Sequence record: PP695294.1 | DNA length: 64,000 nt | Reading direction: 5' to 3' (one strand) | In this document: positions 238-34,154 of the stretch, one piece after another | Layout: each line of letters begins with the position of its first letter | Numbering within the stretch: position 1 is the stretch's first letter | Notes under the pieces: model-generated | The model's input: only the letters and a program-made list of their open reading frames with translations | Told to the model about the DNA's origin: nothing | The model's database searches: none | Position numbers and translations under genes: made by a program

Positions 238-2283
238 TTAGCTCTCCCGACGGTAAACTTTGATAGTGGTGTTGAACTGGGTGAGCAGCACACCGCCTTC
301 AGCGATCAGGTCCAGCGTCACAGAGTAACCATTGGATTTATCGTCTGCAGTGAAGTACGCCTTCGGAGTGACGACAGCAACGTTATCGAGACGGCCTTCC
401 AGACGTTCGATAATTTTGTTCTCAATCATCTTCGCACGTTCATCATCCGTCATGGCCGCTTCGCCAGACATGTCCGCCCATACACGGTCGGAAACACGAT
501 AGACGTAGGTCATCATGAAGTTGAACAGGGCGTTGTTCAGTACAGAACGATCTTCGCTGTAGATTGACTGAATCGCCGGAATGAACAAGCGATAGTAGTC
601 GTAGGAACGGGCAGTGATCAGCGACACATCCCAGTCAGACGCATACACTTCGTTGCCTTTCCACGGCATACTCAGGTCAGTCAGATCTTCGATAATCGTC
701 AGTTCGCCACGGCTGAAACGATAAGCCGGTTTTGCACGACCGTCGCCTGCACCCAGGTACTTCGAGAAGAAGTTCGCCAGGGAGTAGTTCATCGGAACAG
801 GCTTCTTGTAGGAAGAGTTCTTGATGAACGCCGATTGGCCGGTGACCATACCACGTGCAGCCGGAGTGCCGTAATAGGCAGATTCCGGTACCGCTGTGAT
901 CAATTCGATCAGGGCGATTTTTGCACTTTCTTCTGTCTGCTCATCGTTACGACCTTGGTTGTAAACGTGAGTCGCCAGCGTCAAGAAGGTGTTACGTGAA
1001 CGACCGATGAAGTTCACGAGCGCAGCTTTAGTATCGAAGCTAAAGCCAGAGTCCCAGAAACAACCCAGCGAGTATTTCAGCTCGTTGTCGTAACGGACTT
1101 TACCGCCATCCGGGAACAGCAGCATTTCACGGCGAACGAGTTCGTCGTAAACGTCGTTGTTCATGGTACCATCGCTACCACCTTGCAGGTAGTGGATGTT
1201 GGATGCGGAGAACACAACTTTACCGGTTTCAGTAGCCGGGTTTACCTGAAGACCATCGTAAGGCTGGCCCAGTAAATCATAGCCGCCAAAGATGTCAACC
1301 ATATACGGGTCAGCAGGCGCATCAGTTGTGATAGCGGCCTGAGCCAAGCCCAGTACAGTTTCCAGGTTCTCGCGATACAGATAGAACTGCTCGAAAGGAC
1401 CATAATCTGGCAGCTCGCCAATGTCAGGCATCGTCTGACGATATGCATCCGCAACAACAACTTCGAAGTCGAGTTGCGTTCTCATCGGCTGATAGTATGC
1501 ATCGGGCTTAAAGCTAAAATTGATGCTACTCATGCCAGTGAGAGTTTTCCACACTACCGGAGAAGTCACGCCTGCCAGGGTTTCGAACCATTGCAGGGTG
1601 TAAACACGACCACCGACTTCATTTTGATAGGAGGAGGTCAGAGCCGGGCTGGATTTCTCGCTGAGTGGGATCAGTTTGAAACCGAAACCGTTGACGTCAG
1701 CACCCGCATACGGGCCTGCGATATCGAACAACGGATACAGCTTCGATTTCGTGCCGCCTTCGCCAGTCATCGTCCCCTCGATAACCACACCTGCGCCGAT
1801 GGCCGGGGTAGTTTCGTCGATTACGACAGAACGGAAGACGATTACCAAACCGTCAACTTGTTCTTTGATCTTGGGCTTGCCCGAGTTGTCGTACTGAACG
1901 ATCCCGTTGCTGTCGCGTTCGTAGGACGGAACTTTCGTTTCGAGTACGTCGGCGAATACGCGAACACTTGCGGTTTTCGCATCTTCAGGGATCAAGCGCT
2001 GATACATACACTCGTTTGCGTTAGCGTTGAACATCGCCTGATAGGGCGTGTTGAACGTCGCGTAGGGGCCTCGCAAGTCAAAGACATTGCGACCAAGCAG
2101 AGACAGTGCATTATCCCCGGTTAACGGGAACGCCTCGTTGTCTACCCCGCGCGCGGCAAAGGTGAAGATCAGCGGCTTATGAATTGCGTCACCCGTAGGG
2201 GTACGCACAAGCTCGGGGACAGAGTTATCCTGCCAACCTTGCTTGTTATTCAACGGCGCGCCGTTTCGTGGAATAAAAGTCAT
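238..2283 (-). CDS. Contractile tail sheath protein (phiKZ gp29-like)
   Basis: 681 aa with a sheath-like C-terminal region (WDSGF..DTK..L.NF...R; IE.RL.GR). Divergent from the virion-terminase operon as in phiKZ-like phages. Confidence 0.82.
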   Translation of the reverse strand: MTFIPRNGAPLNNKQGWQDNSVPELVRTPTGDAIHKPLIFTFAARGVDNEAFPLTGDNALSLLGRNVFDLRGPYATFNTPYQAMFNANANECMYQRLIPEDAKTASVRVFADVLETKVPSYERDSNGIVQYDNSGKPKIKEQVDGLVIVFRSVVIDETTPAIGAGVVIEGTMTGEGGTKSKLYPLFDIAGPYAGADVNGFGFKLIPLSEKSSPALTSSYQNEVGGRVYTLQWFETLAGVTSPVVWKTLTGMSSINFSFKPDAYYQPMRTQLDFEVVVADAYRQTMPDIGELPDYGPFEQFYLYRENLETVLGLAQAAITTDAPADPYMVDIFGGYDLLGQPYDGLQVNPATETGKVVFSASNIHYLQGGSDGTMNNDVYDELVRREMLLFPDGGKVRYDNELKYSLGCFWDSGFSFDTKAALVNFIGRSRNTFLTLATHVYNQGRNDEQTEESAKIALIELITAVPESAYYGTPAARGMVTGQSAFIKNSSYKKPVPMNYSLANFFSKYLGAGDGRAKPAYRFSRGELTIIEDLTDLSMPWKGNEVYASDWDVSLITARSYDYYRLFIPAIQSIYSEDRSVLNNALFNFMMTYVYRVSDRVWADMSGEAAMTDDERAKMIENKIIERLEGRLDNVAVVTPKAYFTADDKSNGYSVTLDLIAEGGVLLTQFNTTIKVYRRES

Positions 2284-2320
2284 GGAACGTCTCCATATAT
2301 TCGTCTTAAAGACCTGATGG

Positions 2321-2339
2321 TCATACTAAGGATCATACT
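2321..2339 (-). promoter_or_regulatory. Tandem TATG late-promoter-like motifs ahead of the sheath gene
   Basis: Minus strand reads AGTATGATCCTTAGTATGA in the 57-nt divergent gap. TATG is the nvRNAP late promoter core in phiKZ. Confidence 0.45.
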
Positions 2340-2340
2340 C

Positions 2341-3246
2341 ATGGCACTCGAAAACGCTTACAGCGGTAATCCCTTTAATGCACTTGACCTTACTCGCACC
2401 AAGGCAGACCTGGAATTAGCCCGTAAACTTAACCAAACTGTCTCACAGTCCGATGAAGTTCATTACGTTGTTGAGACCGCTGATGTAAAACCGTTTCCTT
2501 TGCCGATTGTTATCGGCGACGACGTTTATGTATACGCAGCCACGTTTACCACGCTGGATAAGACCAACGAGCTAAAAATACGAAACCCAGTCGAACACGC
2601 ATTGCGTCTCGACCAGGCTCGCTGGGAATTGGTGTGGAAACGGAGTAATGGTAAGCTTGCTGCACTGATGGCACAGATGCCCTACCACCATGAGATTTTC
2701 AGCAAATGGGTGTCGGATGCGATTACCCACACGTTTGCACTTGCTCCATATCAAAGTGGGCAAATCAAAGCGTTGGCTGCATTGTTCTCTGTGGGACAGT
2801 TCTATAATCACGTCGAAGATGATGTGAAAGCTTTACGTTTGCAGCAGATGCTGGAGCAACAATTAGGCTTACCTGCGGAACTGTTTGAATCAGTGACAGG
2901 CCACACAGAATATCTTTTCCCGCGTAATATCGCAGAATTCGTCGAAATGGTGCAGGCTGCAGATATCACTCCGCGGGTGCGTGACCTGAGCATTCTGTCT
3001 CTGCAGCAGATGTTGAATACCAGCTTCTTCGGGGTGAGTTATGAAAAACAACTCGCTACTAGCGCCATCGAATATCCGCCTAGTCTCTTCGTTATGATTA
3101 AGGCTTGTCTGGATAATAACATGTTTAACCGCAGTCGGTTAGGTGGGATTGTGAAGAAGTCAGACACCGCTAAGAAACGCGATAAGTTTGAATTCACTTA
3201 CAACCTTCTGTTGAATCAAAACACCAAACCACTGAACATCAAGTAA
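2341..3246 (+). CDS. Conserved virion structural protein (start revised to 2341, 301 aa)
   Basis: AAGGA SD before ATG 2341. The track start at 2179 overlaps the sheath gene. Syntenic with phiKZ gp28. Confidence 0.65.
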   Translation: MALENAYSGNPFNALDLTRTKADLELARKLNQTVSQSDEVHYVVETADVKPFPLPIVIGDDVYVYAATFTTLDKTNELKIRNPVEHALRLDQARWELVWKRSNGKLAALMAQMPYHHEIFSKWVSDAITHTFALAPYQSGQIKALAALFSVGQFYNHVEDDVKALRLQQMLEQQLGLPAELFESVTGHTEYLFPRNIAEFVEMVQAADITPRVRDLSILSLQQMLNTSFFGVSYEKQLATSAIEYPPSLFVMIKACLDNNMFNRSRLGGIVKKSDTAKKRDKFEFTYNLLLNQNTKPLNIK

Positions 3247-12470: not shown

Positions 12471-12980
12471 ATGTTTACTGCGCCAACCATGCGGGTGGGG
12501 CAAGGTCTTAACCTGGTGGTACACGACCAGCGGTTAATCGACCTCTGTGACACAAGCATAATTACTGCGATGATGGACCATAACCCTTTAGGTGACTACG
12601 GAAATACCAGCGAGATTTTGGCTGTTGCTGCCGTCCTCCGTCGTATTTACGGTCAAATAACCATCGTAGATCTCTGTAACTTCATTGACAACCACAGAGA
12701 TTTAACTAAAGGGTTGGTCGCACTTACTCAAGATGGTGTGTCAAGTTTTGACAGTTCTCTTGGTAATTTCTTAGACATCGGTTCCGGGTTCGACTCCGGG
12801 TTAATGTTCATCACACGTGAACGCTACGTCGCCGTCTGGGAATTTCTGCAACGCATGGGTGTGCATGTTCCTGCAAAGATCATGCATTACCAAACTTACG
12901 ACCTGAATATTTTCGGGGAGCCAGGGTTATGGATAAAACCAGTACACCTTGGCCTTGATGGCTATACCATCAAGTGTTAA
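12471..12980 (+). CDS. Hypothetical protein (start revised to 12471, 169 aa)
   Basis: AAGGAG SD before ATG 12471; followed by a terminator. Confidence 0.65.
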   Translation: MFTAPTMRVGQGLNLVVHDQRLIDLCDTSIITAMMDHNPLGDYGNTSEILAVAAVLRRIYGQITIVDLCNFIDNHRDLTKGLVALTQDGVSSFDSSLGNFLDIGSGFDSGLMFITRERYVAVWEFLQRMGVHVPAKIMHYQTYDLNIFGEPGLWIKPVHLGLDGYTIKC

Positions 12981-12987
12981 GTCACTA

Positions 12988-13030
12988 GGCGTACTCTCTT
13001 CGGGGAGTACGCCAATCTTATTTTTTTTAT
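12988..13030 (+). terminator. Intrinsic terminator
   Basis: GGCGTACTCTC-TTCG-GGGAGTACGCC plus a long T-tract. Confidence 0.85.
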
Positions 13031-13671
13031 TTTTTTGATTATTTTTTAACCGGCCGGTTAAAGGGGGTCTAGGAGACGTCAGAAAATGATTAAGTGGTCT
13101 GGATGTAGGGTAGCTCGTTTTTGGCAGTTTATCGTTTTCTAGGGTCGGTTACGTGCGTTTTAGAGGGGGTTATGCATCGAGACAGAGAATTTATTTTTGT
13201 CGGGGCGAGGAAATTCAGGGAATGGGGATTCAGGATTGTATGTTTTTTAACCAGTTATTAAAAACGCTCTAGAAAGCGCTAGAACGAGATTTATACCTGA
13301 CCCAGTACACTTGGGTTCCCCCTACCGGAAAATCGCGCCAGCGGGCCGTTGAGAGCGCGAGAGTGCCATTCCCGTTTCGGTTCCGAGGTGACGGTCGCGG
13401 CCGGCGACGACGATCACACGTTGGGTAGCACTTCGTGCCATGTCTGGGTGAAAACTGGATCGTTCTGTAACCGACACACACTGTCGGTTACTTACGAGTT
13501 CTTTGGGTTGTTTAACTCGCTCTAAAATCCCCCTTAGGGGATAATTTAATCTAATTCTCAAAATTTCTTTTTAAAACAATCACTTAGATTGTTTTTTAGA
13601 TTGATCCTGTGGATCGGGTCGAAGACCCTTTCCTTATACGCGTGCGCGTGCGCACACCCGTATCCTCCAGG

Positions 13672-13781
13672 ATCTTTTAAAAGATATATAATAATATTAA
13701 ATATAATAATACCTTTAGGTATTATATTTAATTATTATAATTATTTATATAAATAAATATATTAATATATTAAGATCTTAA
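13672..13781. other. Extremely AT-rich element built from chained palindromes (candidate replication origin / DNA unwinding element)
   Basis: Perfect palindromes at 13672-13685, 13741-13756, 13756-13771 and 13770-13781; hairpin 13706-13725; flanked by ACGCGTGC boxes. Confidence 0.6.
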
Positions 13782-13869
13782 AACGCGTGCAGGCGCGCGC
13801 GTGATCCTTATTAAGAGATCGTGATCGGACGGAAGTCCTAGTTTGGGTACCCTGTGTATTTTTTACGTG

Positions 13870-13997
13870 GTTTCCCTATCGTGTGTTCAGACCACCACAC
13901 GACGTCCAAAACCCATAGCTTCGGTGGCCGCCTCCCTGGACGGCAGACTCTGACAAGTCGACCCACACCACCAACCCGTCCGGGGACGGATTTTTAT
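13870..13997 (+). ncRNA. Putative small structured RNA ending in a terminator
   Basis: Hairpins CGTGTG/CACACG and GCCG/CGGC; terminator CCGTCC/GGACGG plus TTTTT; no credible ORF. Confidence 0.35.
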
Positions 13998-14017
13998 TCC
14001 AACGACAAGCTCCACGA

Positions 14018-14093
14018 AAATCCCCGCAGAGGGACTCACTGCTGTGTGACTCACCGGCTCCTGGACGCCTACGCCTCGAGCCGGTAATTTTTT
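14018..14093 (+). ncRNA. Putative small structured RNA or terminator
   Basis: ACCGGCTC (14053-14060)/GAGCCGGT (14078-14085) stem plus TTTTTT, with small upstream hairpins. Confidence 0.35.
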
Positions 14094-14109
14094 GATTACG
14101 TGAGTTTGT

Positions 14110-14690
14110 TGTTATATGCGAATAGCGATTGACCGCGCCAATGGTCCAATCACTTTTAAACCCTGCACGCTAGGGCTCCAAGTCCTGGGACTGATACCCA
14201 GGACGCTTTTTCGAAAATACCTACCGTGGTGTCTTCGACAAAGCGCAATCTAACACTGCGTGATTTATTATGTTCTGGAAAACTTTCGCCGTGGAACAGA
14301 ACCGGTGAGCGTCGGCGGGGATTCCGACAATCACCACCCATTCAGGTACTCGGTAAATAACCGACCTGCCGACGGTGCTACGTCGGGCGTAGTTCGGTTT
14401 GCGAGAGTGTCGAGAAAGTCGACTGCGCACCCATGACAAAATCCGAGTTGACCGTGGCAGCGCCAGAGGACTGGGCAGCGGAGAGACGTCGTTGAACTTA
14501 CCTCCGATAGTTATCGCTGATTCCGCTCTGGCGTCGGGCCAAAACTGATTCGAATTCGGCGTTGCGTCGAAAAGGGGTCTGCGTGTAGAACCGCAGACTT
14601 GGGGGATAACTCCAAAGTGGGGTGATCGGATCTTGACGGCTCGGAATAGACGAGAGGGGCGGGTACTCCCGTTGAGAAACGACGGTACCT
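14110..14690 (+). ncRNA. Putative large (~580 nt) multi-domain structured ncRNA
   Basis: No SD-supported ORF. Nested helices 14442-14449/14638-14645, 14461-14468/14526-14533, 14182-14189/14197-14204 and 14577-14583/14592-14598. Confidence 0.6.
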
Positions 14691-14698
14691 GGCTGATT

Positions 14699-14707
14699 AA
14701 AATTTAC
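14699..14707 (+). promoter_or_regulatory. AAAATTTAC middle-promoter-like motif
   Basis: 44 nt upstream of the ATG at 14751; recurrent motif. Confidence 0.55.
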
Positions 14708-14750
14708 AGATTCTGCGTGAGGTATGATAAACCAAACGGAGAATTAAACC

Positions 14751-15326
14751 ATGAACTTGTATCGCGTCGGGTTTTACCGAAACGAGATGCCTGAATCGGT
14801 TTTGGTTGTCTTAGCCGAAAACGAGGAGCAGGCCAAATCCTTCTGGCCGGTTAGCGCAGAGCGTCCAGCGGTTGCGTGCTGCTACGACGGCGCTGTGTCT
14901 ACCCCGATGGTTACGCCTGGGGTGGTTCTGAAGCAAGGCCGTTGGGATGATTATTCCCATCCCGGTTTGGAATTTGTTTCCGAATCCGCCAGACACACCT
15001 GGAATCTTACCACGGGTAAAACCAGAGTGTACTTCGGCTACCAAGCCAAGCAACCGTCGATCATCAAGCTGTACCTGGTTTACAGCGACGTCGCTACCGA
15101 AGACTATGTCGACGCCGGAATCATCGTCGGGGCAACAACCCCCGAGGCGGCATTCGCACATTGGGACGGTGATAAACCCGGAATCGTTTCGGTCTGTGAG
15201 CTACCACTTGAAGCCGGTTTGGTTACGAACATCAAGTGTGAGCAAGGCCAGGAGCTGACTTGGATGCGCCAGGATTACCTGACGGAAACGACATTCGAGT
15301 ACACACCGAGGAAGGTGGCCCAATGA
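14751..15326 (+). CDS. Hypothetical protein with two copies of a small domain also found in 16048-16290
   Basis: GGAG SD. Repeats NLYRV...VLVVLAENEEQA and KLYLV...GIIVGATTPEAA. Confidence 0.7.
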   Translation: MNLYRVGFYRNEMPESVLVVLAENEEQAKSFWPVSAERPAVACCYDGAVSTPMVTPGVVLKQGRWDDYSHPGLEFVSESARHTWNLTTGKTRVYFGYQAKQPSIIKLYLVYSDVATEDYVDAGIIVGATTPEAAFAHWDGDKPGIVSVCELPLEAGLVTNIKCEQGQELTWMRQDYLTETTFEYTPRKVAQ

Positions 15327-15814
15327 CGACGATAGCGTTCGATGGAAAAGTCTTAGCTGCTGACGGCCAGTTAACCCGTGGGTCGAATATCTGCAACCTG
15401 AATACCCAGAAGTTATTCGTCTGCCCTTCTGACGAGGAATGGTGGATTACTGGTGAACGGATTGTGGCGTTCGGAGTAAGCGGCGACATCACAGGACAAT
15501 TGGCCCTGCTGGAAACTATCCGCTTGAGACCTGGTTACAAGGGGTTAACGCAAAGCTCGCAGTTACCTGCGAAGATGGATTTTACTTTCCTGATGCTTTT
15601 GGCCTCAGGAAAAGCGATAGTCGGCGGAAAACGTGAAGACGACGTGACGTTGTGGTGGAGTGAAGCCACACCACCTCTGGCAACCGGAAGCGGTTACGAG
15701 TACGCGTTGGGTGCGATGAAGATGGGCGCGAATGCGGTTCGTGCTGTTGAGATTGCGTCCGAATGCGATATCTACACCGGTGGTGAGATTAGCACTTACG
15801 AACTACGGAGGTGA
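15323..15814 (+). CDS. Ntn-hydrolase, HslV/proteasome beta-type threonine peptidase (start revised to 15323, 163 aa)
   Basis: ATGA overlap with the upstream gene. N-terminus M-TTIAFDGKVLAADGQ.T; conserved K in QKL; ATGSG; DIYTGG. Confidence 0.8.
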   Translation: MTTIAFDGKVLAADGQLTRGSNICNLNTQKLFVCPSDEEWWITGERIVAFGVSGDITGQLALLETIRLRPGYKGLTQSSQLPAKMDFTFLMLLASGKAIVGGKREDDVTLWWSEATPPLATGSGYEYALGAMKMGANAVRAVEIASECDIYTGGEISTYELRR

Positions 15815-15907
15815 ATCATGCGGGAGTCAGAAGCACGCAAGCTTGACCCCATCAATCGCCTGCGATAACGGGGTAGCGCATCCGTATAAACACGTTTAAA
15901 GAATTCT

Positions 15908-15983
15908 GGGGGTATGGCGCAATTGGTAGCGCACCGGTCTCCAAAACCGAAGGTTCGAGGTTCGAAACCTCGTGCCCCCGCCA
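15908..15983 (+). tRNA. trnW: tRNA-Trp(CCA)
   Basis: 76-nt cloverleaf: acceptor GGGGGUA/UGCCCCC, anticodon loop CU-CCA-AA, T-loop UUCGAAA, encoded 3' CCA. Confidence 0.93.
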
Positions 15984-16047
15984 CATTTAGCCAACGAATT
16001 CAGGTTCAACACAGAAGACACAGATTTGTCAACTGTTGGAGAACAAC

Positions 16048-16290
16048 ATGAATTTGTACTTGCTAGAACGAACTGACGATATCGGGTATGATGAATTTGA
16101 TTCCATAATCGTGGCGGCTCCTACGGAGCAAGCCGCGTGTGCAATTCCTCCCGACCGTGGTTATTGGATGGACTGCCGCTGGTTACCGAAAGAGCGCTGG
16201 GATGAAGGGCTTACCCTGACCGTTACTCTTATCGGCACTACGCACTATCCTGCTGGGACCGTCGTTCATGAATCGTTCAATGCTGGCTAA
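16048..16290 (+). CDS. Small hypothetical protein (80 aa), paralog of the 14751 domains
   Basis: GGAG SD before ATG 16048; MNLYLL...SIIVAAPTEQAA. Confidence 0.7.
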   Translation: MNLYLLERTDDIGYDEFDSIIVAAPTEQAACAIPPDRGYWMDCRWLPKERWDEGLTLTVTLIGTTHYPAGTVVHESFNAG

Positions 16291-16292
16291 AC

Positions 16293-16310
16293 AGTGGGCT
16301 TCGGCCCACT
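16293..16310 (+). other. cUUCGg hairpin with no U-tract at the start of the ncRNA array
   Basis: AGTGGGC-TTCG-GCCCACT. Confidence 0.6.
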
Positions 16311-16321
16311 AACCCTATTCG

Positions 16322-16470
16322 AGCCATGATACTTACTCAGATTGTGCGGGTTGATGTCCCGCATGAGCCGGTAGCAGCTCAGACCTACGGTAAACCGATA
16401 AATCCGTAGCAGCCAGGTACACAAAGCACCAGGTCGCTTGTACAGGATGCTGGGTATCTGACCGGTCATA
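16322..16470 (+). ncRNA. Putative structured ncRNA A (~150 nt)
   Basis: Helices TGCGGG/CCCGCA, TCAGA/TCTGA (16379/16457), CTACGG/CCGTAG, CAGC/GCTG and CCGGT/ACCGG. Confidence 0.5.
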
Positions 16471-16565
16471 ACCTCATTCGATACGAGACACGTTTATGCA
16501 TGAAATACTCCAGTACATCAGGATGTTGATTTCCAACGTCCGGTTCTGGGTATTCAATCATGTTT

Positions 16566-16687
16566 GGTTTACAGGCGATGGGTTTTCCCGTAAGGGCCCC
16601 ACTTACAGACTGGCGTCTCCACGACAACCGTCCCTAGGGGACAGGCAAGCACCGGCCCATTAAGCCGCCATGCTACGCCTGTAAATC
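16566..16687 (+). ncRNA. Putative structured ncRNA B (~120 nt)
   Basis: Perfect 10-bp closing stem TTTACAGGCG (16568-16577)/CGCCTGTAAA (16676-16685) enclosing CCC-GTAA-GGG, TGGCG/CGCCA and GTCCC/GGGAC. Confidence 0.6.
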
Positions 16688-16691
16688 CACA

Positions 16692-16893
16692 ATCTGATAA
16701 CCGAATGGGATTGAGTTCCCAGTGTTAGGGTGACTGTGTGTCACCGTAGGCGCGGTACCTCATACGGCCGGTACGCCACGAATGTACGTGATAGCGGGTG
16801 GTGCTTGGAGACGCTAAGACCTGACCTTGCGGCCAGGCTCAGAAGAAGAAGTCCATCACCTGCAATCAGAAATGAATTTAGGTTAATTATCGG
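16692..16893 (+). ncRNA. Putative structured ncRNA C (~200 nt)
   Basis: Closing pairing 16694-16702/16881-16893; GGTGAC/GTCACC; 10-bp helix 16794-16803/16854-16863 with G-U pairs. Confidence 0.5.
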
Positions 16894-16934
16894 AAGCGGC
16901 GAAATCGCTTACGTGATAACTTAGTAGTATGCAA

Positions 16935-17320
16935 CGAACAATACCAGAGTGACTTTACGAGGTTACTGTGGTATATGTCGGTGCTCCGGGCAACGTGTTG
17001 CCGCAGATAGGCCCGAGGGAGCTGAGTGCACTAACACACGCCGGGATGCACCGGCACCTTACAATGGGAGCGCTGTCACCATCAGTGATGACAGGAGTGA
17101 AGGATTCGTACCTCACTCGACTGGGCGGAAGCCTGGGCGTTCCCCCATCTTCACATCATGGCCGGCTTGCCGGTTCAACGTTGACGTCTCGTAAGAGATT
17201 TCCAGTCAGGCAACTGATAACACACCTAAGCGTCGACCTTGGACGTATGGTGTCTGGTTAAGTCCCCCGAAACGGAAACCAGTAGGGGTGTGGTACGTTG
17301 AGTGTAACTATCATGATGCC
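16935..17320 (+). ncRNA. Putative structured ncRNA D (~380 nt) directly upstream of a tRNA-like element
   Basis: Back-to-back helices ATACCA/TGGTAT, GGCAAC/GTTGCC, GCCGG/CCGGC, CTGTCA/TGACAG, GAGTGA/TCACTC, GACTGG/CCAGTC, TCTC-GTAA-GAGA and CTGGTT/AACCAG. Confidence 0.6.
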
Positions 17321-17329
17321 ATGAACAAT

Positions 17330-17399
17330 GGCTTTGTAGCTCAGGTAGGTAGAGCAACCTCTTCGAGGAAGGTCGCCGGTTCGAGTCCGGTCAAAGCAA
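17330..17399 (+). ncRNA. tRNA-like RNA with a 13-nt anticodon arm (tRNA mimic or pseudo-tRNA)
   Basis: Canonical U8A9, GCUC/GAGC D-arm, AGGUC variable loop and GCCGG-UUCGAGU-CCGGU T-arm; anticodon arm 4 nt short; G1-A72 mismatch; no CCA. Confidence 0.75.
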
Positions 17400-17476
17400 G
17401 AGCAGCGAAGTTAGAGGAATTAACACCCGACTCATAATCGGATATTTCGCGGGTTCGAATCCCTGCCACTTGCTCG
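17400..17476 (+). tRNA. Degenerate tRNA with CAU anticodon (Met or Ile2; possible pseudogene)
   Basis: Anticodon arm CCCGA-CUCAUAA-UCGGA and T-loop UUCGAAU. T-stem bulged, acceptor stem imperfect, no CCA. Confidence 0.6.
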
Positions 17477-17486
17477 CCCTATGTAA

Positions 17487-17505
17487 ACTCAGATATATTT
17501 TACCT
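17487..17505 (+). promoter_or_regulatory. Variant early (vRNAP) promoter-like motif before the HNH gene
   Basis: CAGATATATTTTACCTAAG resembles AGATATTACCTAAG at 19434. Confidence 0.45.
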
Positions 17506-17538
17506 AAGAGAATAGGTAAACGTATTTGAGAGGTAATA

Positions 17539-18078
17539 ATGAAAGATTTAACCCTACCACCAGGCGACTGGGCACCGTGTCCGGATGCGCCCGATTACTT
17601 CATGGTTTCGAGAAAAGGTGAATTATATTCACTTCGTTCAAACCGTATTGTTTCTCAAAATGTGGTTGGAAATGGGTATTTAGCCCACGTTACAAAAATA
17701 GGCGGAAGGAAAGGTGTTAATGTGGTGCTTAAAACGCACATACAGGTCGCCAAAGCTTTCCACCCTAATCCTGAGAACAAGCCAGAAGTGAACCACAAAA
17801 ACGGTATTAAGTCCTGTAATGAGGACTGGAACGTTGAATGGTCGACGCGACGTGAAAATCACGAACATGCTGTCGAACATGGGCTTTTCTCTTGTATAAA
17901 TGACCATCGTGGTCAACGTTCTCCGAAGATGACTGGAATGGAGATTCGCGAACTCTTAGAAAACCCGAGCGGCAGCCTTAAGCAATGCGCGGAAGAGTAT
18001 AACGTGGATCGTAAAACTATCCAGAACATTCGGAGTAACCCAGCACGTTACTTGTCAATGACATTGACTAAAAAGTAA
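17539..18078 (+). CDS. Free-standing NUMOD4/HNH homing endonuclease
   Basis: Y.VS..G...S N-terminal motif; HIQVAKAF.PNPENKPEVNHKNGIK..N...NVEW.T..EN..HA; C-terminal HTH-like segment; GAGG SD. Confidence 0.9.
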   Translation: MKDLTLPPGDWAPCPDAPDYFMVSRKGELYSLRSNRIVSQNVVGNGYLAHVTKIGGRKGVNVVLKTHIQVAKAFHPNPENKPEVNHKNGIKSCNEDWNVEWSTRRENHEHAVEHGLFSCINDHRGQRSPKMTGMEIRELLENPSGSLKQCAEEYNVDRKTIQNIRSNPARYLSMTLTKK

Positions 18079-18084
18079 CCATCA

Positions 18085-18375
18085 ATTTGTGTTATCCTTA
18101 TCCCGAAGGCATTCGAAATAAGACGCGTATCCACACACGGGTCAAGGATAACACGAACCACTTCCGCGGTCACCGTGTCCATTGCCGCCTACCTGCATGG
18201 GCTGTCCTCCGACACGGTGACTTCGGGCCAACTTACAGGCCAGGGCCGTTTGGGTTTTTCTTACGCATCCATCCAGAGCCACCTCGCGCCCTAGTCTGTA
18301 TACCCCTTTTCTGTTCCTGGTTTGCCAACTAAATCAATTAAGCCTGGTGCGTTGCCCTGGGAACAGAAAACTTAT
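18085..18375 (+). ncRNA. Putative structured ncRNA E (~290 nt)
   Basis: Perfect 11-bp stems 18089-18099/18144-18154 and 18169-18179/18211-18221; 14-bp stem 18307-18320/18357-18370 with G-U pairs. Confidence 0.55.
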
Positions 18376-18458
18376 TCGGTTACACACCGAACCCACCCAC
18401 GAGGGATATGTCGTGGACTACCAATAGAAGCAGCAATAGTAGTAAGAAGGAAAGCAAC

Positions 18459-19280
18459 ATGTTTACAGTTAAACGTGTAATTGATGGTGACCGCATTATT
18501 ACCGAACATGAAAAAGTTCGTATCGGTGACCGTAAGTCTCGTGTATTCCGCGAGGCATTAAAAATGCTCGAGAACGAGCGCTTCGACATCGTTGTCGATG
18601 ATGAAAAGTTAGCCCTTAATCCGGGGTTAAAACGCATTGCCCCTGATGTGCCTGATCCGAACACCATGCTTTTGTCTGATTATTGTAGCTGGTCGCACAG
18701 ATTATATAAAAGTCAGGTTTATGCACACGCGTATTTGCGGCAGCTTTTCCCCAACCTTATTATCCCCGATTTGGAAACGGTCGAGGTGTTTAACTGCAAC
18801 GCACGCGAGTTTATTAGCTACGTGCTAGATAATAAGGGCAACGCTATCTTGGTACTGGCGACAAATTTATGTGAACCAGAAGCCATGGATAGTATCTGCG
18901 GCGAACTCGTTGGTTTCGGTACTCCCCCAGAGAAATTAGGCTGGTACAAACCATCTCCTGATAGCGACATGGCGATCATTGTCTACACTCAGGAAGAACT
19001 GCAACAAGTCGAATTAGAGCCTGGTCCATCTATCGAGTTCACTGGTGTCCAGGAGCAGTCGCAGTGGATTAACGGTGAGTCTGTTGTTACTGTTTTAAAA
19101 GGCGCTCGCCCTGGCGACCGGTCAGTCGATGAACTGATTGGCGCAATGTGCATCGAAGAAGAATCTGGATACGATCCTGATAACCAGATCAGTACCGGTG
19201 CGTTGTACGAACTGTTTTATAAAGGCGACGAAGTCTACGTGGTTAACTCTCACGGTAAGACTACCGACGTCCTTCGCTGA
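18459..19280 (+). CDS. Hypothetical protein (start revised to 18459, 273 aa)
   Basis: AAGGA SD; acidic ORF; followed by a terminator. Confidence 0.7.
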   Translation: MFTVKRVIDGDRIITEHEKVRIGDRKSRVFREALKMLENERFDIVVDDEKLALNPGLKRIAPDVPDPNTMLLSDYCSWSHRLYKSQVYAHAYLRQLFPNLIIPDLETVEVFNCNAREFISYVLDNKGNAILVLATNLCEPEAMDSICGELVGFGTPPEKLGWYKPSPDSDMAIIVYTQEELQQVELEPGPSIEFTGVQEQSQWINGESVVTVLKGARPGDRSVDELIGAMCIEEESGYDPDNQISTGALYELFYKGDEVYVVNSHGKTTDVLR

Positions 19281-19429: not shown

Positions 19430-19444
19430 AGATAGATATTACCT
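19430..19444 (+). promoter_or_regulatory. Early (vRNAP) promoter-like motif
   Basis: AGATAGATATTACCT; family motif related to the phiKZ early promoter TATATTAC. Confidence 0.65.
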
Positions 19445-32430: not shown

Positions 32431-33798
32431 GTGAGAAAGGTACCAAAATTCTACGGAATATCCGGCCGGTTGGTTAGTCAGGATAACTATTTGTCCGATT
32501 TGCAAATAGAAGCTGCAGCCAAAGGTATTAAACCACCCACTATTATTAACGATGTCGCCGTTAACGGGGATGCGATCGAGGTTGCTGAACTTATCGATCG
32601 CATGGTACAGAACAGAATCGTTGACGAAGAACTGAACTCTGCACCGATTTGTAGTTTGGATTGTCCGGCACCGATCGCGCATCGTTACAATCTCGGTTGT
32701 AAGTGTCCGACGTGTGGCTATGTTGTAACTGAACATCGAATTGAATCCGATGTCTGGTTACGTGCACCTGATGAAATGGGTAACTTCGTCAACCCACGAT
32801 TCTGGGCAATGTTCAATGCTTTCTTTAATAGCAAGTTGAAGAAGTTTGAACGTAACAAGGTCACTATCGAACGTGGTAATGACTTGATGATGTGGATGAT
32901 TGACCCGTATTACCGTATAGAAGAACCAGACGGTAAACGCGCACATGCTGTGAAACGTGTATTGGAAGAACATGGTTTCGTTCGTGGCTTGCGCAATCTG
33001 GTTGATAACCACGTTAGTATCTTTAACATCCTTACCACGCCAGAAGCCTGGAAGGAAATCTTCGCACCTAATCGGCATAACGCCGCTGAAGGTGAACGCT
33101 TACGTTTACAATGGAAGGAGCTATTCGAAACGCAACGTCACGCATTCTTCCCAAGACATTTACCGCTAATCTCCTCTAAACTTATCGTTACTGAGGAAGG
33201 TCGTCGTGGTGTCATGGTAGACCCAGTGTTCACGGGTGCTATTGACGCGGTGAAAAATATCGCGTTGCTCTATACGCGGCGTAAAGCGATCGAACCACGT
33301 TTTCTGATTAGTCGTGCTTTGAAAGCGAACCGTCAGTTAACGTACTTCCACATGGACTTCCGTCGTGAGTCTATGGAAGGTAAACCGGGTGACTATCGTG
33401 CGAAATTGGGTTCTACCCATATCCCGTTCGGTGGTCGTGCAACCATCTCACCTATCTCAGAACCACACGATGCCTGGAAGTTAAAAGCACCATGGCGTTG
33501 GATGGTTGGGTTGATGTCGACCCACATCGAGAACAAACTGCTACGACGGGGTTATTCGTCACGGCAATGTGAGCGTATCGTTGCAAAAGCGGCAATGCAG
33601 TATGACCCGCTTGTAGACGAAATCTTTAAAGAACTGATTCGTGAATCCCCAGGCGGTCTTGGGATCATGGTCATACCGTTACGTAACCCAACGCTGGTAC
33701 AGTTGTCTATTCAAACGCTGTACATCGATGAAGTTGTTACCGATGTTAACCAGTGTTCGCTGCGTATCTCTGACCGTGTGATCAAGATGGCTAACGGT
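32431..33798 (+). CDS. nvRNAP beta-prime N-terminal subunit, exon 1 (phiKZ gp55-like)
   Basis: Zn-ribbon CSLDC...CKCPTC; GKPGDYRAKLG; GGRATISP; LRNPTL; ends ...KMANG at the predicted 5' splice site. Confidence 0.88.
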
Positions 33799-34154
33799 TC
33801 GAAAAGAGCCCCATCGGACGGGAAACCTCTGATGCGTATTCTCCTGAAATGCTGGGAAACCCTAAAGCGTATCTACCAGAAATGGGGACGAAAGTCTGAA
33901 ACAACAGATACGATGGCCTACGCTAAACAATACTGCTAACGGTTGTGATAATGGGTAATCAGCAGCGAAGCCTCGTGAGAGGAACGTTCAACGACTATCG
34001 CTGAAATGCGAGTAGGGGTCCCAGTGGACTTCGAAGTGGGAGAACACCTAAGGCGATAGCTATGGTGAAGATATAGTCTGTGCCTTATCGAGAGATAAGG
34101 AGGGTGTCTTAGCACACCTGCTGTATACGGAAACGGTATACGGTGGACAAACAG
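33799..34154 (+). mobile_element. Group I self-splicing intron, 356 nt, no internal ORF
   Basis: P1 GGUUC-GAAAA-GAGCC with a U-G wobble at 33798; P AAAUGCUGGGAA (33847); Q AAUCAGCAGC (33957); R GUUCAACGACUA (33986); S AAGAUAUAGUC (34068); P3 UUCUCC/GGAGAA; terminal G 34154. Splicing restores MANG-DFDGD in frame. Confidence 0.93.

Follow-up and report, generated by a model that had tools for sequence, protein, structure and literature searches.

A probable new family of large structured non-coding RNA in SPN3US-like jumbo phages

Our comparative analyses showed that a stretch of about 577 nucleotides (nt) in the genome of Salmonella phage 1252 is conserved as a folded molecule, and probably represents a new family of large structured phage non-coding RNA. 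The DNA analyzed here, called the window throughout, comprises 64,000 nt of record PP695294.1 and matches phage 1252 (PP695294) with 100% identity; the candidate RNA is located at 14118–14694 on its plus strand. Phage 1252 is an SPN3US-like jumbo phage of 243 kilobases (kb) in the genus Seoulvirus. An earlier note, made from the letters of the window, had proposed a multi-branched RNA without open reading frames at 14110–14690. With homologs collected from related jumbo phages, we found a conserved multi-domain fold whose helices show compensatory changes across four phage genera: Seoulvirus, Erskinevirus, Machinavirus and Wellingtonvirus. This supports the observation as real and its interpretation as essentially right, with one outer helix that needs correcting.

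Results

A conserved region without coding signature

The region lies within the largest gene-free gap of the window (12981–14750, 1.77 kb), which is flanked by a conserved gene of 184 amino acids (aa) and a 191-aa orphan gene, followed by an HslV-like peptidase gene and tRNA-Trp. A syntenic, essentially unannotated gap is found in the Seoulvirus relatives SPN3US, SPFM4, SPAsTU and pEa_SNUABM_29. The gap recurs in three genera of Erwinia phages, Erskinevirus, Machinavirus and Wellingtonvirus; the genes upstream of it are the same, as are the HslV-like gene and tRNA-Trp that come after. The gene directly 3′ of the candidate RNA belongs to at least four unrelated families across genera.

As the earlier note had claimed, the region is free of genuine reading frames: no frame stays open in 15 relatives, and codon periodicity is absent. 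Compared with SPAsTU and pEa_SNUABM_29, the upstream flanking genes showed a pronounced excess of third-position changes (p 1e-6 to 1e-13), and no 300-nt segment wholly within 12981–14750 had a three-base periodicity (p 0.3–0.97). Searches by tblastn with all stop-to-stop frames gave similarly weak matches in every frame, as plain nucleotide similarity does. Identity of the candidate RNA to SPAsTU is 72–77%, like that of the conserved upstream genes, and falls to 43–59% in the stretch downstream. Positions 14118–14694 are thus non-coding and under purifying selection and, being well conserved, must be selected for something other than protein.

That a decayed gene or a gene for a small protein explains the conservation is hence most improbable, although two frames might be taken to suggest it. 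In phage 1252 a stretch of 157 codons on the minus strand is free of stops, but this frame is broken in the close relative SPFM4 and in pEa_SNUABM_29. On the plus strand, a Shine–Dalgarno-like sequence (GGAGGUGAUC) lies 10–14 nt before a UUG that opens a frame of 20 codons, MAAR(K/E)DERG..., in 11 of 18 sequences (14633–14697); the frame stops at a UGA within a conserved GCUGA. However, a 1-nt insertion shifts this mini-frame in all SPN3US-type Salmonella phages, and in phages of the type of Erwinia phage Kwan a stop trims it to 13 codons. Over four genera only one synonymous change is seen in its first nine codons, and the second half differs radically with the RNA pairing still intact. We rejected it as a micropeptide gene and judge it, though odd, a by-product of constraints on the RNA.

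The 3′ domain

The 3′ domain was tested in a sequence-only MAFFT alignment of 20 sequences covering window positions 14433–14699, with a structure from RNAalifold to which three hairpins were added by eye. Over its 51 pairs, 92.6% of the alignment cells hold standard pairs, compared with 37–46% when the 3′ partners were slid by 1–3 columns. Changes on both sides were found for 24 pairs (6–11 in the slid controls), and the covariation score was 0.358 (about 0.09 when slid); none of 500 column shuffles reached the observed score or the observed paired percentage.

Helices Pb and Pd are the best supported of this domain (Table 1). In Pb, six of the eight inner pairs are changed on both sides and 96% of the cells are paired; the pair U14455–A14541 is U-A in 17 sequences and C-G in three, and is never broken. 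Part of this helix, CGCCAGAG/CTCTGGCG (14461–68/14526–33), had been drawn in the earlier note, and six of these eight pairs proved to be compensated. Likewise, the proposed hairpin GGTAC/GTACC turned out to be part of Pd and to covary. Here nine of 14 pairs are changed on both sides, with 97.5% of the cells paired, and at the base of the helix C, U or G at 14660 is accompanied by G, A or C at 14691, with 12 changes on both sides. Within the sub-domain closed by Pb, the stem below the AACUUAC loop covaries; in Machinavirus seven of its pairs differ in sequence. The predicted hairpin GTCTGCG/CGCAGAC (14577–83/14592–98) also covaries and forms the center of H2, whose paired percentage of 73.8% is lowered by a register shift in the sequence-only alignment. 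H2 is supported, and so are H1 and H3.

The linker between H3 and the core is Shine–Dalgarno-like, with matches of 6–10 nt to the complement of the 16S rRNA 3′ tail, and its tetranucleotide varies only among the self-complementary forms GAUC, GGUC and GAUU. The core itself is invariant in all true homologs recovered from the four genera, although the further loci had been retrieved by means of that very 21-nt pattern; in Salmonella phages it is interrupted by one additional nucleotide (T or C at 14647). In the possible small core hairpin CUCG/CGAG nothing varies, and covariation is accordingly absent.

Several long-range pairings were discarded. Helix Pa of the first consensus fold (CCGU 14452–55/ACGG 14636–39) was rejected, as U14455 covaries perfectly with A14541 and C14452–C14453 are engaged in helix Pj. 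From the full-length consensus fold, we dropped GCCA (14138–41)/UGGC (14690–93) and CACCC (14335–39)/GGGGC (14657–61), which clash with the base of Pd; their 5′ partners are missing in Machinavirus. The outer helix TCCGAGTT/GGCTCGGA of the earlier note is unsupported and not real, because its CCGAG pairs with CUCGG (14349–53), and the GCGGA/TCCGC helix is not kept beyond the closest relatives.

The 5′ domain and its variable insert

For the full length, the consensus fold of Seoulvirus and Erskinevirus sequences (alignment A4) contains 121 pairs, of which 28 are changed on both sides. All 16 sequences, which stem from four genera, have Ha as a hairpin of 6–10 pairs with lineage-specific sequence; the hairpin GTCCTGGG/CCCAGGAC (14182–89/14197–204) seen in the single sequence is thus kept with different letters throughout. 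Hb has 90.6% of its cells paired, compared with 40–57% in slid controls, and eight of its pairs are changed on both sides.

In Pj, the conserved UUCAGGU runs into a helix with sequence just 5′ of a conserved GUGG(C/U)AGC. The duplex is found in all 16 sequences, although these differ in sequence, with energies of -9.8 to -17.0 kcal/mol against -4 to -7.6 kcal/mol for shuffled partners, and it covaries in all four genera. It uses the CCGAG that had been assigned to the invariant GGCUCGGA. Two further proposed hairpins, TCGGT/ACCGA and GTCGA/TCGAC, lie in the variable insert enclosed by Pj (14355–14440) and are lineage-specific, not conserved. Machinavirus lacks about 170 nt of the 5′ domain, which leaves an RNA of about 400 nt; segment 14272–14328 is not found in this genus.

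The insert-bearing stretch is a divergence hot spot among Salmonella phages, 82–88% identical to SPFM4 between flanks of 99–100% identity. More widely, SPFM4-type Salmonella phages are 99–100% identical on both sides of the RNA and 82–91% identical across 14177–14700, with insertions and deletions in the variable insert. This divergence suggests recombination with another lineage or fast evolution of the insert.

The structured strand

Folding of the single sequence was better than that of shuffled controls, with z = -3.45 for the plus strand and none of 100 shuffles as good. The minus strand gave z = -3.48; because it folds equally well, energy alone says nothing on the strand. By our own arithmetic, about two to three perfect Watson–Crick matches of 8 base pairs are expected by chance in 580 nt, so the helices seen in the single sequence are not significant by themselves and the comparative data have to decide.

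The earlier argument that G-U pairs mark the plus strand as the transcribed one was borne out by cell counts of 156 G-U versus 23 A-C in the 3′ domain and 41 versus 3 in the 5′ domain. As the structure was derived on the plus strand, this count is biased toward it, and we hence also folded each alignment de novo as its reverse complement. The consensus energies, forward versus reverse, were -46.8/-21.2, -129.2/-82.0 and -34.2/-12.8 kcal/mol. The structured molecule is the plus strand, which it shares with the promoter-like motifs and the neighboring genes.

Promoter-like motifs at the boundaries

Two promoter-like motifs, P2 and P3, bracket a unit from G14118 to about 14694, and the limits proposed earlier match it within a few bases. 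The proposed end point nearly coincides with that of the last conserved hairpin (14694), just before P3. The underlying motif is built of a T-run, [T/C]AC[G/A], 14 nt and T[A/G]T[A/G]. The window contains six copies of the strict form, compared with 0.54 in shuffles; all six are on the plus strand, mostly just 5′ of genes, among them the DNA polymerase gene.

P2 is a relaxed form. Together with the adjoining TATATG-CGAA it is kept in SPAsTU, pEa_SNUABM_29 and Erskinevirus, and the sequence just upstream is not conserved; in Machinavirus and Wellingtonvirus the conserved block has equivalent promoter-like motifs at its 5′ edge. In most relatives P3 lies at +61 to +75, counted from window 14638, where the invariant core, used as alignment anchor, begins; the pEa9 and pEa10 groups lack it. 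The phiKZ middle promoter has AAanTTACc near -24 and TATG with its G as +1 (PMC4666361). The motifs here are alike in sequence: TTAC spans -22 to -19, and TATG coincides with the predicted start. The T-run-TTAC-N14-TATG motif, which is co-oriented with the genes, looks like a middle promoter class.

Homologs and searches for known RNA families

Used as a search pattern, the invariant 21-nt core retrieved extra loci from viral and metagenome contigs and brought the set to 25 distinct true homologs. Exact matches were limited to the same phage clade, apart from two chance matches (L029, L037) that score 16–17 bits, compared with 90–96 bits for real copies. A covariance model of the core (93 positions) found one copy in the window (14602–14694, 96 bits) and, even with filters off, none in the syntenic loci of Derbicusvirus (CR5, Derbicus, Phobos), the next-nearest genus. 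The core pattern had zero matches in 185,579 bacterial and archaeal species, with one genome each.

In cmscan searches against Rfam, a check that the earlier note had proposed, no family was matched in seven phages. Apart from tRNAs and a known intron, none reached the gathering score in the whole window or an E value up to 10 in 12950–14800, and none reached E up to 0.1 in six homologous loci. The earlier reading had found no signature of RNase P, transfer-messenger RNA (tmRNA), signal recognition particle (SRP) or group I intron, and this was confirmed. The Rfam models of 6S RNA, RNase P RNA, tmRNA and SRP RNA have no match in the window, and ARAGORN found only tRNA-Trp in the window and neither a tmRNA nor a hidden tRNA in gap 12981–14750. 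The group I intron model detects the true intron at 33779–34100 and nothing in the gap, and the region is intergenic rather than within a gene. Known ribozyme families of Rfam match neither the region nor the homologous loci. Targets in the window complementary to the AACUUAC loop or to CUAACAC are not enriched over shuffles.

A natural insertion splits the RNA

In the phages Kwan and Wellington and in two relatives known from metagenomes, H3 is separated from the core by a 634-nt cassette with an HNH endonuclease gene, which leaves core and Pd intact. An uninterrupted relative of the Kwan-type phages is 99% identical in the cassette flanks. Homing endonucleases typically insert in or beside highly conserved sequences. 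The cassette shows that the linker between H3 and core tolerates a large insertion, at least transiently. The first 66 nt of the cassette resemble the int-alpA RNA motif near threshold (RF02996, 31 bits against a gathering score of 35.8).

This insertion is the main reason to consider a separable 3′-core module. The locus would then hold two or more modules, a 5′ RNA from Ha to H3 and a separate 3′ element of about 70–95 nt (core and GNRA hairpin), for example a protein-binding site, a small ribozyme or a processing element. The exact position of the cassette between H3 and core is in agreement with such a division, as is the far stronger conservation of the 3′ core, and with Pa dropped no covarying long-range pair joins the core to the upstream part. 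However, both parts are always adjacent and in the same order in four genera, no promoter-like motif lies between them, and known ribozyme families give no match. Moreover, with flanks 99% identical the Kwan insertion is very recent and says little on long-term tolerance. We hence consider separate modules rather improbable.

Table 1. Coordinates of the candidate RNA, its structural elements and nearby features (window positions unless stated)
Feature	Position	Strand	Description
Candidate RNA overall	14118–14694	+	About 577 nt here; about 400–410 nt in Machinavirus, about 555 nt in Wellingtonvirus
Origin-like island	13576–13850		Contains the most AT-rich 100 nt of the window (93%, 13671–13780); small central palindrome, flanking G+C-rich GCGTGCGCG-type inverted repeats
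Strict T-run-TTAC-N14-TATG copies	13860, 14701, 20957, 26497, 30201, 38091	+	
P1, middle-type promoter-like motif	13860–13885		Same distance in Seoulvirus and Erskinevirus
P2, promoter-like, 5′ boundary	14090–14118	+	T-run, TACG 14097–14100, 14-nt spacer, TATG 14115–14118; predicted +1 G14118
Leader hairpin CCCUG/UAGGG	14161–14175	+	Leader only in Seoulvirus and Erskinevirus; one covarying pair, C-G in seven, U-A in three
Ha	14182–14204	+	G+C-rich hairpin directly 5′ of U-run; terminator-like
Hb	14204–14245	+	Long hairpin, 16 pairs; 5′ strand holds U-run (14207–14211), paired with UCGACAAAGC
Unpaired CUAACAC	14250–14256	+	Conserved in Seoulvirus, Erskinevirus and Machinavirus
Hairpins GUUCUG/CAGAAC (14272–77/14297–302) and GUCGG/CCGAC (14311–15/14324–28)	14272–14328	+	Seoulvirus and Erskinevirus only; covarying pairs
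Conserved CCACCCAUUCAGGUA	14334–14348	+	UUCAGGU part in all four genera
Pj	14345–14453	+	GGUACUCGGU (14345–54) with AUCCGAGUUGACC (14441–53); encloses variable insert
Pb	14455–14541	+	UGGC and GCGCCAGA (14455–67) with UCUGGCGU and GCCA (14527–41); closes sub-domain
Hairpin with 7-nt loop AACUUAC	14488–14510	+	Loop (14495–14501) in Seoulvirus, Erskinevirus and Machinavirus, not Wellingtonvirus
H1	14555–14571	+	UUCGGCG-UUG-CGUCGAA; 100% of cells paired, one pair changed on both sides
H2	14575–14600	+	Around GUCUGCG/CGCAGAC, conserved loop UGUAGAAC; 5 of 8 pairs changed on both sides
H3 (CUCC/GGGG) and linker GGUGAUC..AUCUUG	14610–14635	+	Included in the 3′-domain alignment test
Invariant core GGCUCGGAA(N)AGACGAGAGGGG	14636–14659	+	21 nt; possible small hairpin CUCG/CGAG (14640–43/14651–54)
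Pd, terminal hairpin	14657–14694	+	14 pairs, GNRA loop GAGA 14674–77, then conserved GCUGA
P3, promoter-like, next gene	14701–14726	+	Strict form; TTTAC 14703–07, TATG 14723–26; marks 3′ limit of the RNA
HNH cassette	Kwan locus (L009) 1882–2515		Corresponds to window about 14614–14634
tRNA-Trp	15908–15983		About 1.2 kb downstream of candidate RNA; ARAGORN

An origin-like island and other features of the neighborhood

An AT- and GATC-rich island lies 340 nt upstream of the RNA. The structured transcript, or single-stranded DNA of the same strand, might serve it as primer, R-loop former or priming signal. The island has the highest GATC density of the window, seven sites in 250 nt, where the window as a whole holds 152 and 250 would be expected. 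In four genera it is conserved (73–83%) and always lies shortly before the RNA; the pEa10 group has only about 100 nt between the island and the promoter of the RNA. The purine-rich 3′ core may favor RNA–DNA hybrids. On the other hand, all predicted promoters fire away from the island, priming would leave about 50 covarying pairs over many hairpins unexplained, and the island is a candidate only. A link between the RNA and an origin therefore seems very unlikely to us. Several GenBank records of this phage group begin in or near the island; position 1 of SPN3US equals window 13567.

The left half of the gap (12981–13560) is conserved and non-coding as well. Within it, a block of 25–30 nt around ACCCAGTACACTTGGGTTCCCCC (13295–13326) is 92–97% identical in Machinavirus phages with diverged surroundings, and a terminator-like hairpin lies on the minus strand at 13286–13265. 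After P1, positions 13860–14093 hold two short units, each closed by a terminator-like hairpin and a T-run (13976–13998, 14055–14093). These are possibly further small RNAs; the consensus fold of 13860–14093 showed no clear strand preference.

Elsewhere in the window, the group I intron (33779–34100), scored at 69.4 bits by Rfam, extends over the end of a reading frame that resembles RNA polymerase beta (32431–33939). A second tRNA-like sequence at 17330–17399, with 40.9 bits in Rfam and no ARAGORN match, corresponds to a 'tRNA-OTHER' in the SPN3US annotation and is followed by an HNH endonuclease gene (17539–18078). An AT-rich motif, (A)GATAGATATTATCT with a G about 5 nt later, occurs on the plus strand at 19432, 22398, 30438, 38901, 40317 and 44060. 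In the form ATAGATATTATCT, about 5 nt and G, it precedes several genes of unknown function and one for an RNA-polymerase-subunit-like product (44101). The motif agrees with the early promoters reported as 'extended AT-rich' for this phage group (PMC5312081) and is probably an early promoter class used by the virion polymerase.

Discussion

On balance we favor, by a modest degree of confidence, that 14118–14694 encodes an undescribed large structured non-coding RNA that is made in mid-infection and acts in trans, as a folded RNA or within an RNA–protein particle. Judged from the motifs, transcription would run rightward from a promoter of the phiKZ middle type, with G14118 as +1, by the non-virion RNA polymerase of the phage. 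As no plus-strand terminator was found before 18500, the primary transcript probably reaches the HslV-like gene and tRNA-Trp. The RNA would thus probably form the head of a longer transcript with both and then be freed by processing in the manner of tRNAs. The contact surface for a partner, be it a protein, the ribosome, a tRNA or further copies of the RNA, would lie in the invariant core and the conserved loops, while the peripheral 5′ part and the insert would vary freely. Since the next gene differs by genus and mostly has its own promoter-like motif, a regulator of a single gene is unlikely.

Several points speak against this assignment. From 14690 to 18500 the plus strand lacks a canonical terminator for the 3′ end, so that the RNA could be a long leader. 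A terminator scan flagged Ha and its U-run (14182–14212), which fit the terminator pattern, only about 90 nt past the predicted start. The pEa9 and pEa10 groups have no promoter between the last hairpin and the next gene, whose ribosome-binding site comes immediately after the hairpin. Kwan-type phages are viable with the HNH cassette splitting the RNA, and a single contiguous RNA may hence be dispensable. Furthermore, the comparison covers about six to eight independent lineages of one phage clade, which limits covariation power for the 5′ domain. The transcript itself we infer from sequence, and our literature search turned up neither a description of the region nor RNA-seq or transcriptome data for SPN3US-like phages.

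The missing terminator and the abutting ribosome-binding sites would suit a leader or spacer acting in cis: as the long 5′ untranslated part of a middle operon made up of the RNA, a small gene, the HslV-like gene and tRNA-Trp, it would control read-through, stability, processing or translation of the downstream genes. In such a leader Ha with the U-run could be an attenuator; the Shine–Dalgarno-like sequence and the UUG mini-frame overlap the core, and the HslV-like gene and tRNA-Trp are conserved further downstream. Against this stands the immediate downstream gene, with its unrelated families, and the separate promoter-like motif before it in most genomes. Moreover, the U-run is also the 5′ strand of the covarying Hb, and in the pEa10 group a promoter-like motif lies only about 20 nt upstream of Ha. 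A covarying structure of 400–580 nt also far exceeds known leaders. Riboswitches and cis leaders are recognized by a constant associated gene with no promoter between, an arrangement that most relatives do not show, although the pEa9 and pEa10 groups lack the intervening motif. We thus regard a cis-acting leader as unlikely.

For the trans-acting RNA that we favor, our preferred guess would be a scaffold or sequestering particle of the ROOL/GOLLD kind, tied to the tRNA and translation genes of the phage. It is conceivable, but to our minds doubtful, that it represents the first 'ornate' large RNA of nucleus-forming jumbo phages, a particle, maybe self-assembling or protein-based, with a mid-infection role in trans in translation, tRNA handling or host defense.

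Large, elaborately folded phage RNAs such as GOLLD and ROOL have been known for more than ten years, and to our knowledge none has been assigned a function; most are found in phages and prophages with which laboratory work is difficult. The family described here combines clear covariation, an invariant core and a natural insertion variant, in phages that grow on laboratory Salmonella and E. coli. Such genetically tractable hosts would offer a workable system to find out what giant phage RNAs do. Amber mutants of SPN3US exist, and antisense knock-down has been developed for phages; with oligomers it has been applied to other jumbo phages (PMC12571901). If our reading is true, the known biology of phages with a nucleus-like compartment and RNA polymerases of their own would gain an RNA component. 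In addition, the origin-like island and the promoter motifs are a useful annotation for this phage group.

Among known systems, the RNA resembles ColE1 RNA II, as well as the T4 and T7 origin transcripts, as a predicted structured transcript of about 550 nt beside an origin-like element. This is a resemblance only; transcription here is predicted to run away from the AT-rich island. The stable RNAs C and D of T4 are small (about 120–140 nt) and lie in a tRNA gene cluster. They share with the RNA described here a phage origin and the transcription region of the phage tRNAs but, compared by description, differ in size. The small RNAs of phiKZ and 201phi2-1 are likewise non-coding transcripts of jumbo phages with their own RNA polymerases, where ours is predicted. 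In 201phi2-1, a middle promoter drives a tRNA (PMC11512511). However, the small RNAs of these Pseudomonas phages were chosen as units below 250 nt, are mostly derived from 5′ untranslated regions, and none is a multi-domain molecule of 400–580 nt.

ROOL (RF03087) and GOLLD (RF01998) come closest in kind. The earlier note had suggested the GOLLD/ROOL class or a new class; neither covariance model matches, even at E values up to 10, so the RNA is neither ROOL nor GOLLD by membership and probably represents a new family of this known kind of RNA. Its setting differs as well, in four genera only of lytic, nucleus-forming jumbo phages of Enterobacterales. RNA-only homo-oligomeric cages are a mark of ROOL and GOLLD; for the present RNA the sole hint of such assembly is the linker tetranucleotide with its self-complementary forms. 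Nevertheless, ROOL and GOLLD are phage-encoded RNAs of several hundred nt, ORF-free, with many covarying helices and near tRNA genes, and the RNA of phage 1252, with about 577 nt, 121 consensus pairs, clear covariation, its phage origin and a nearby tRNA-Trp, shows the same traits. Like GOLLD, it joins a constant 3′ part to a variable 5′ part.

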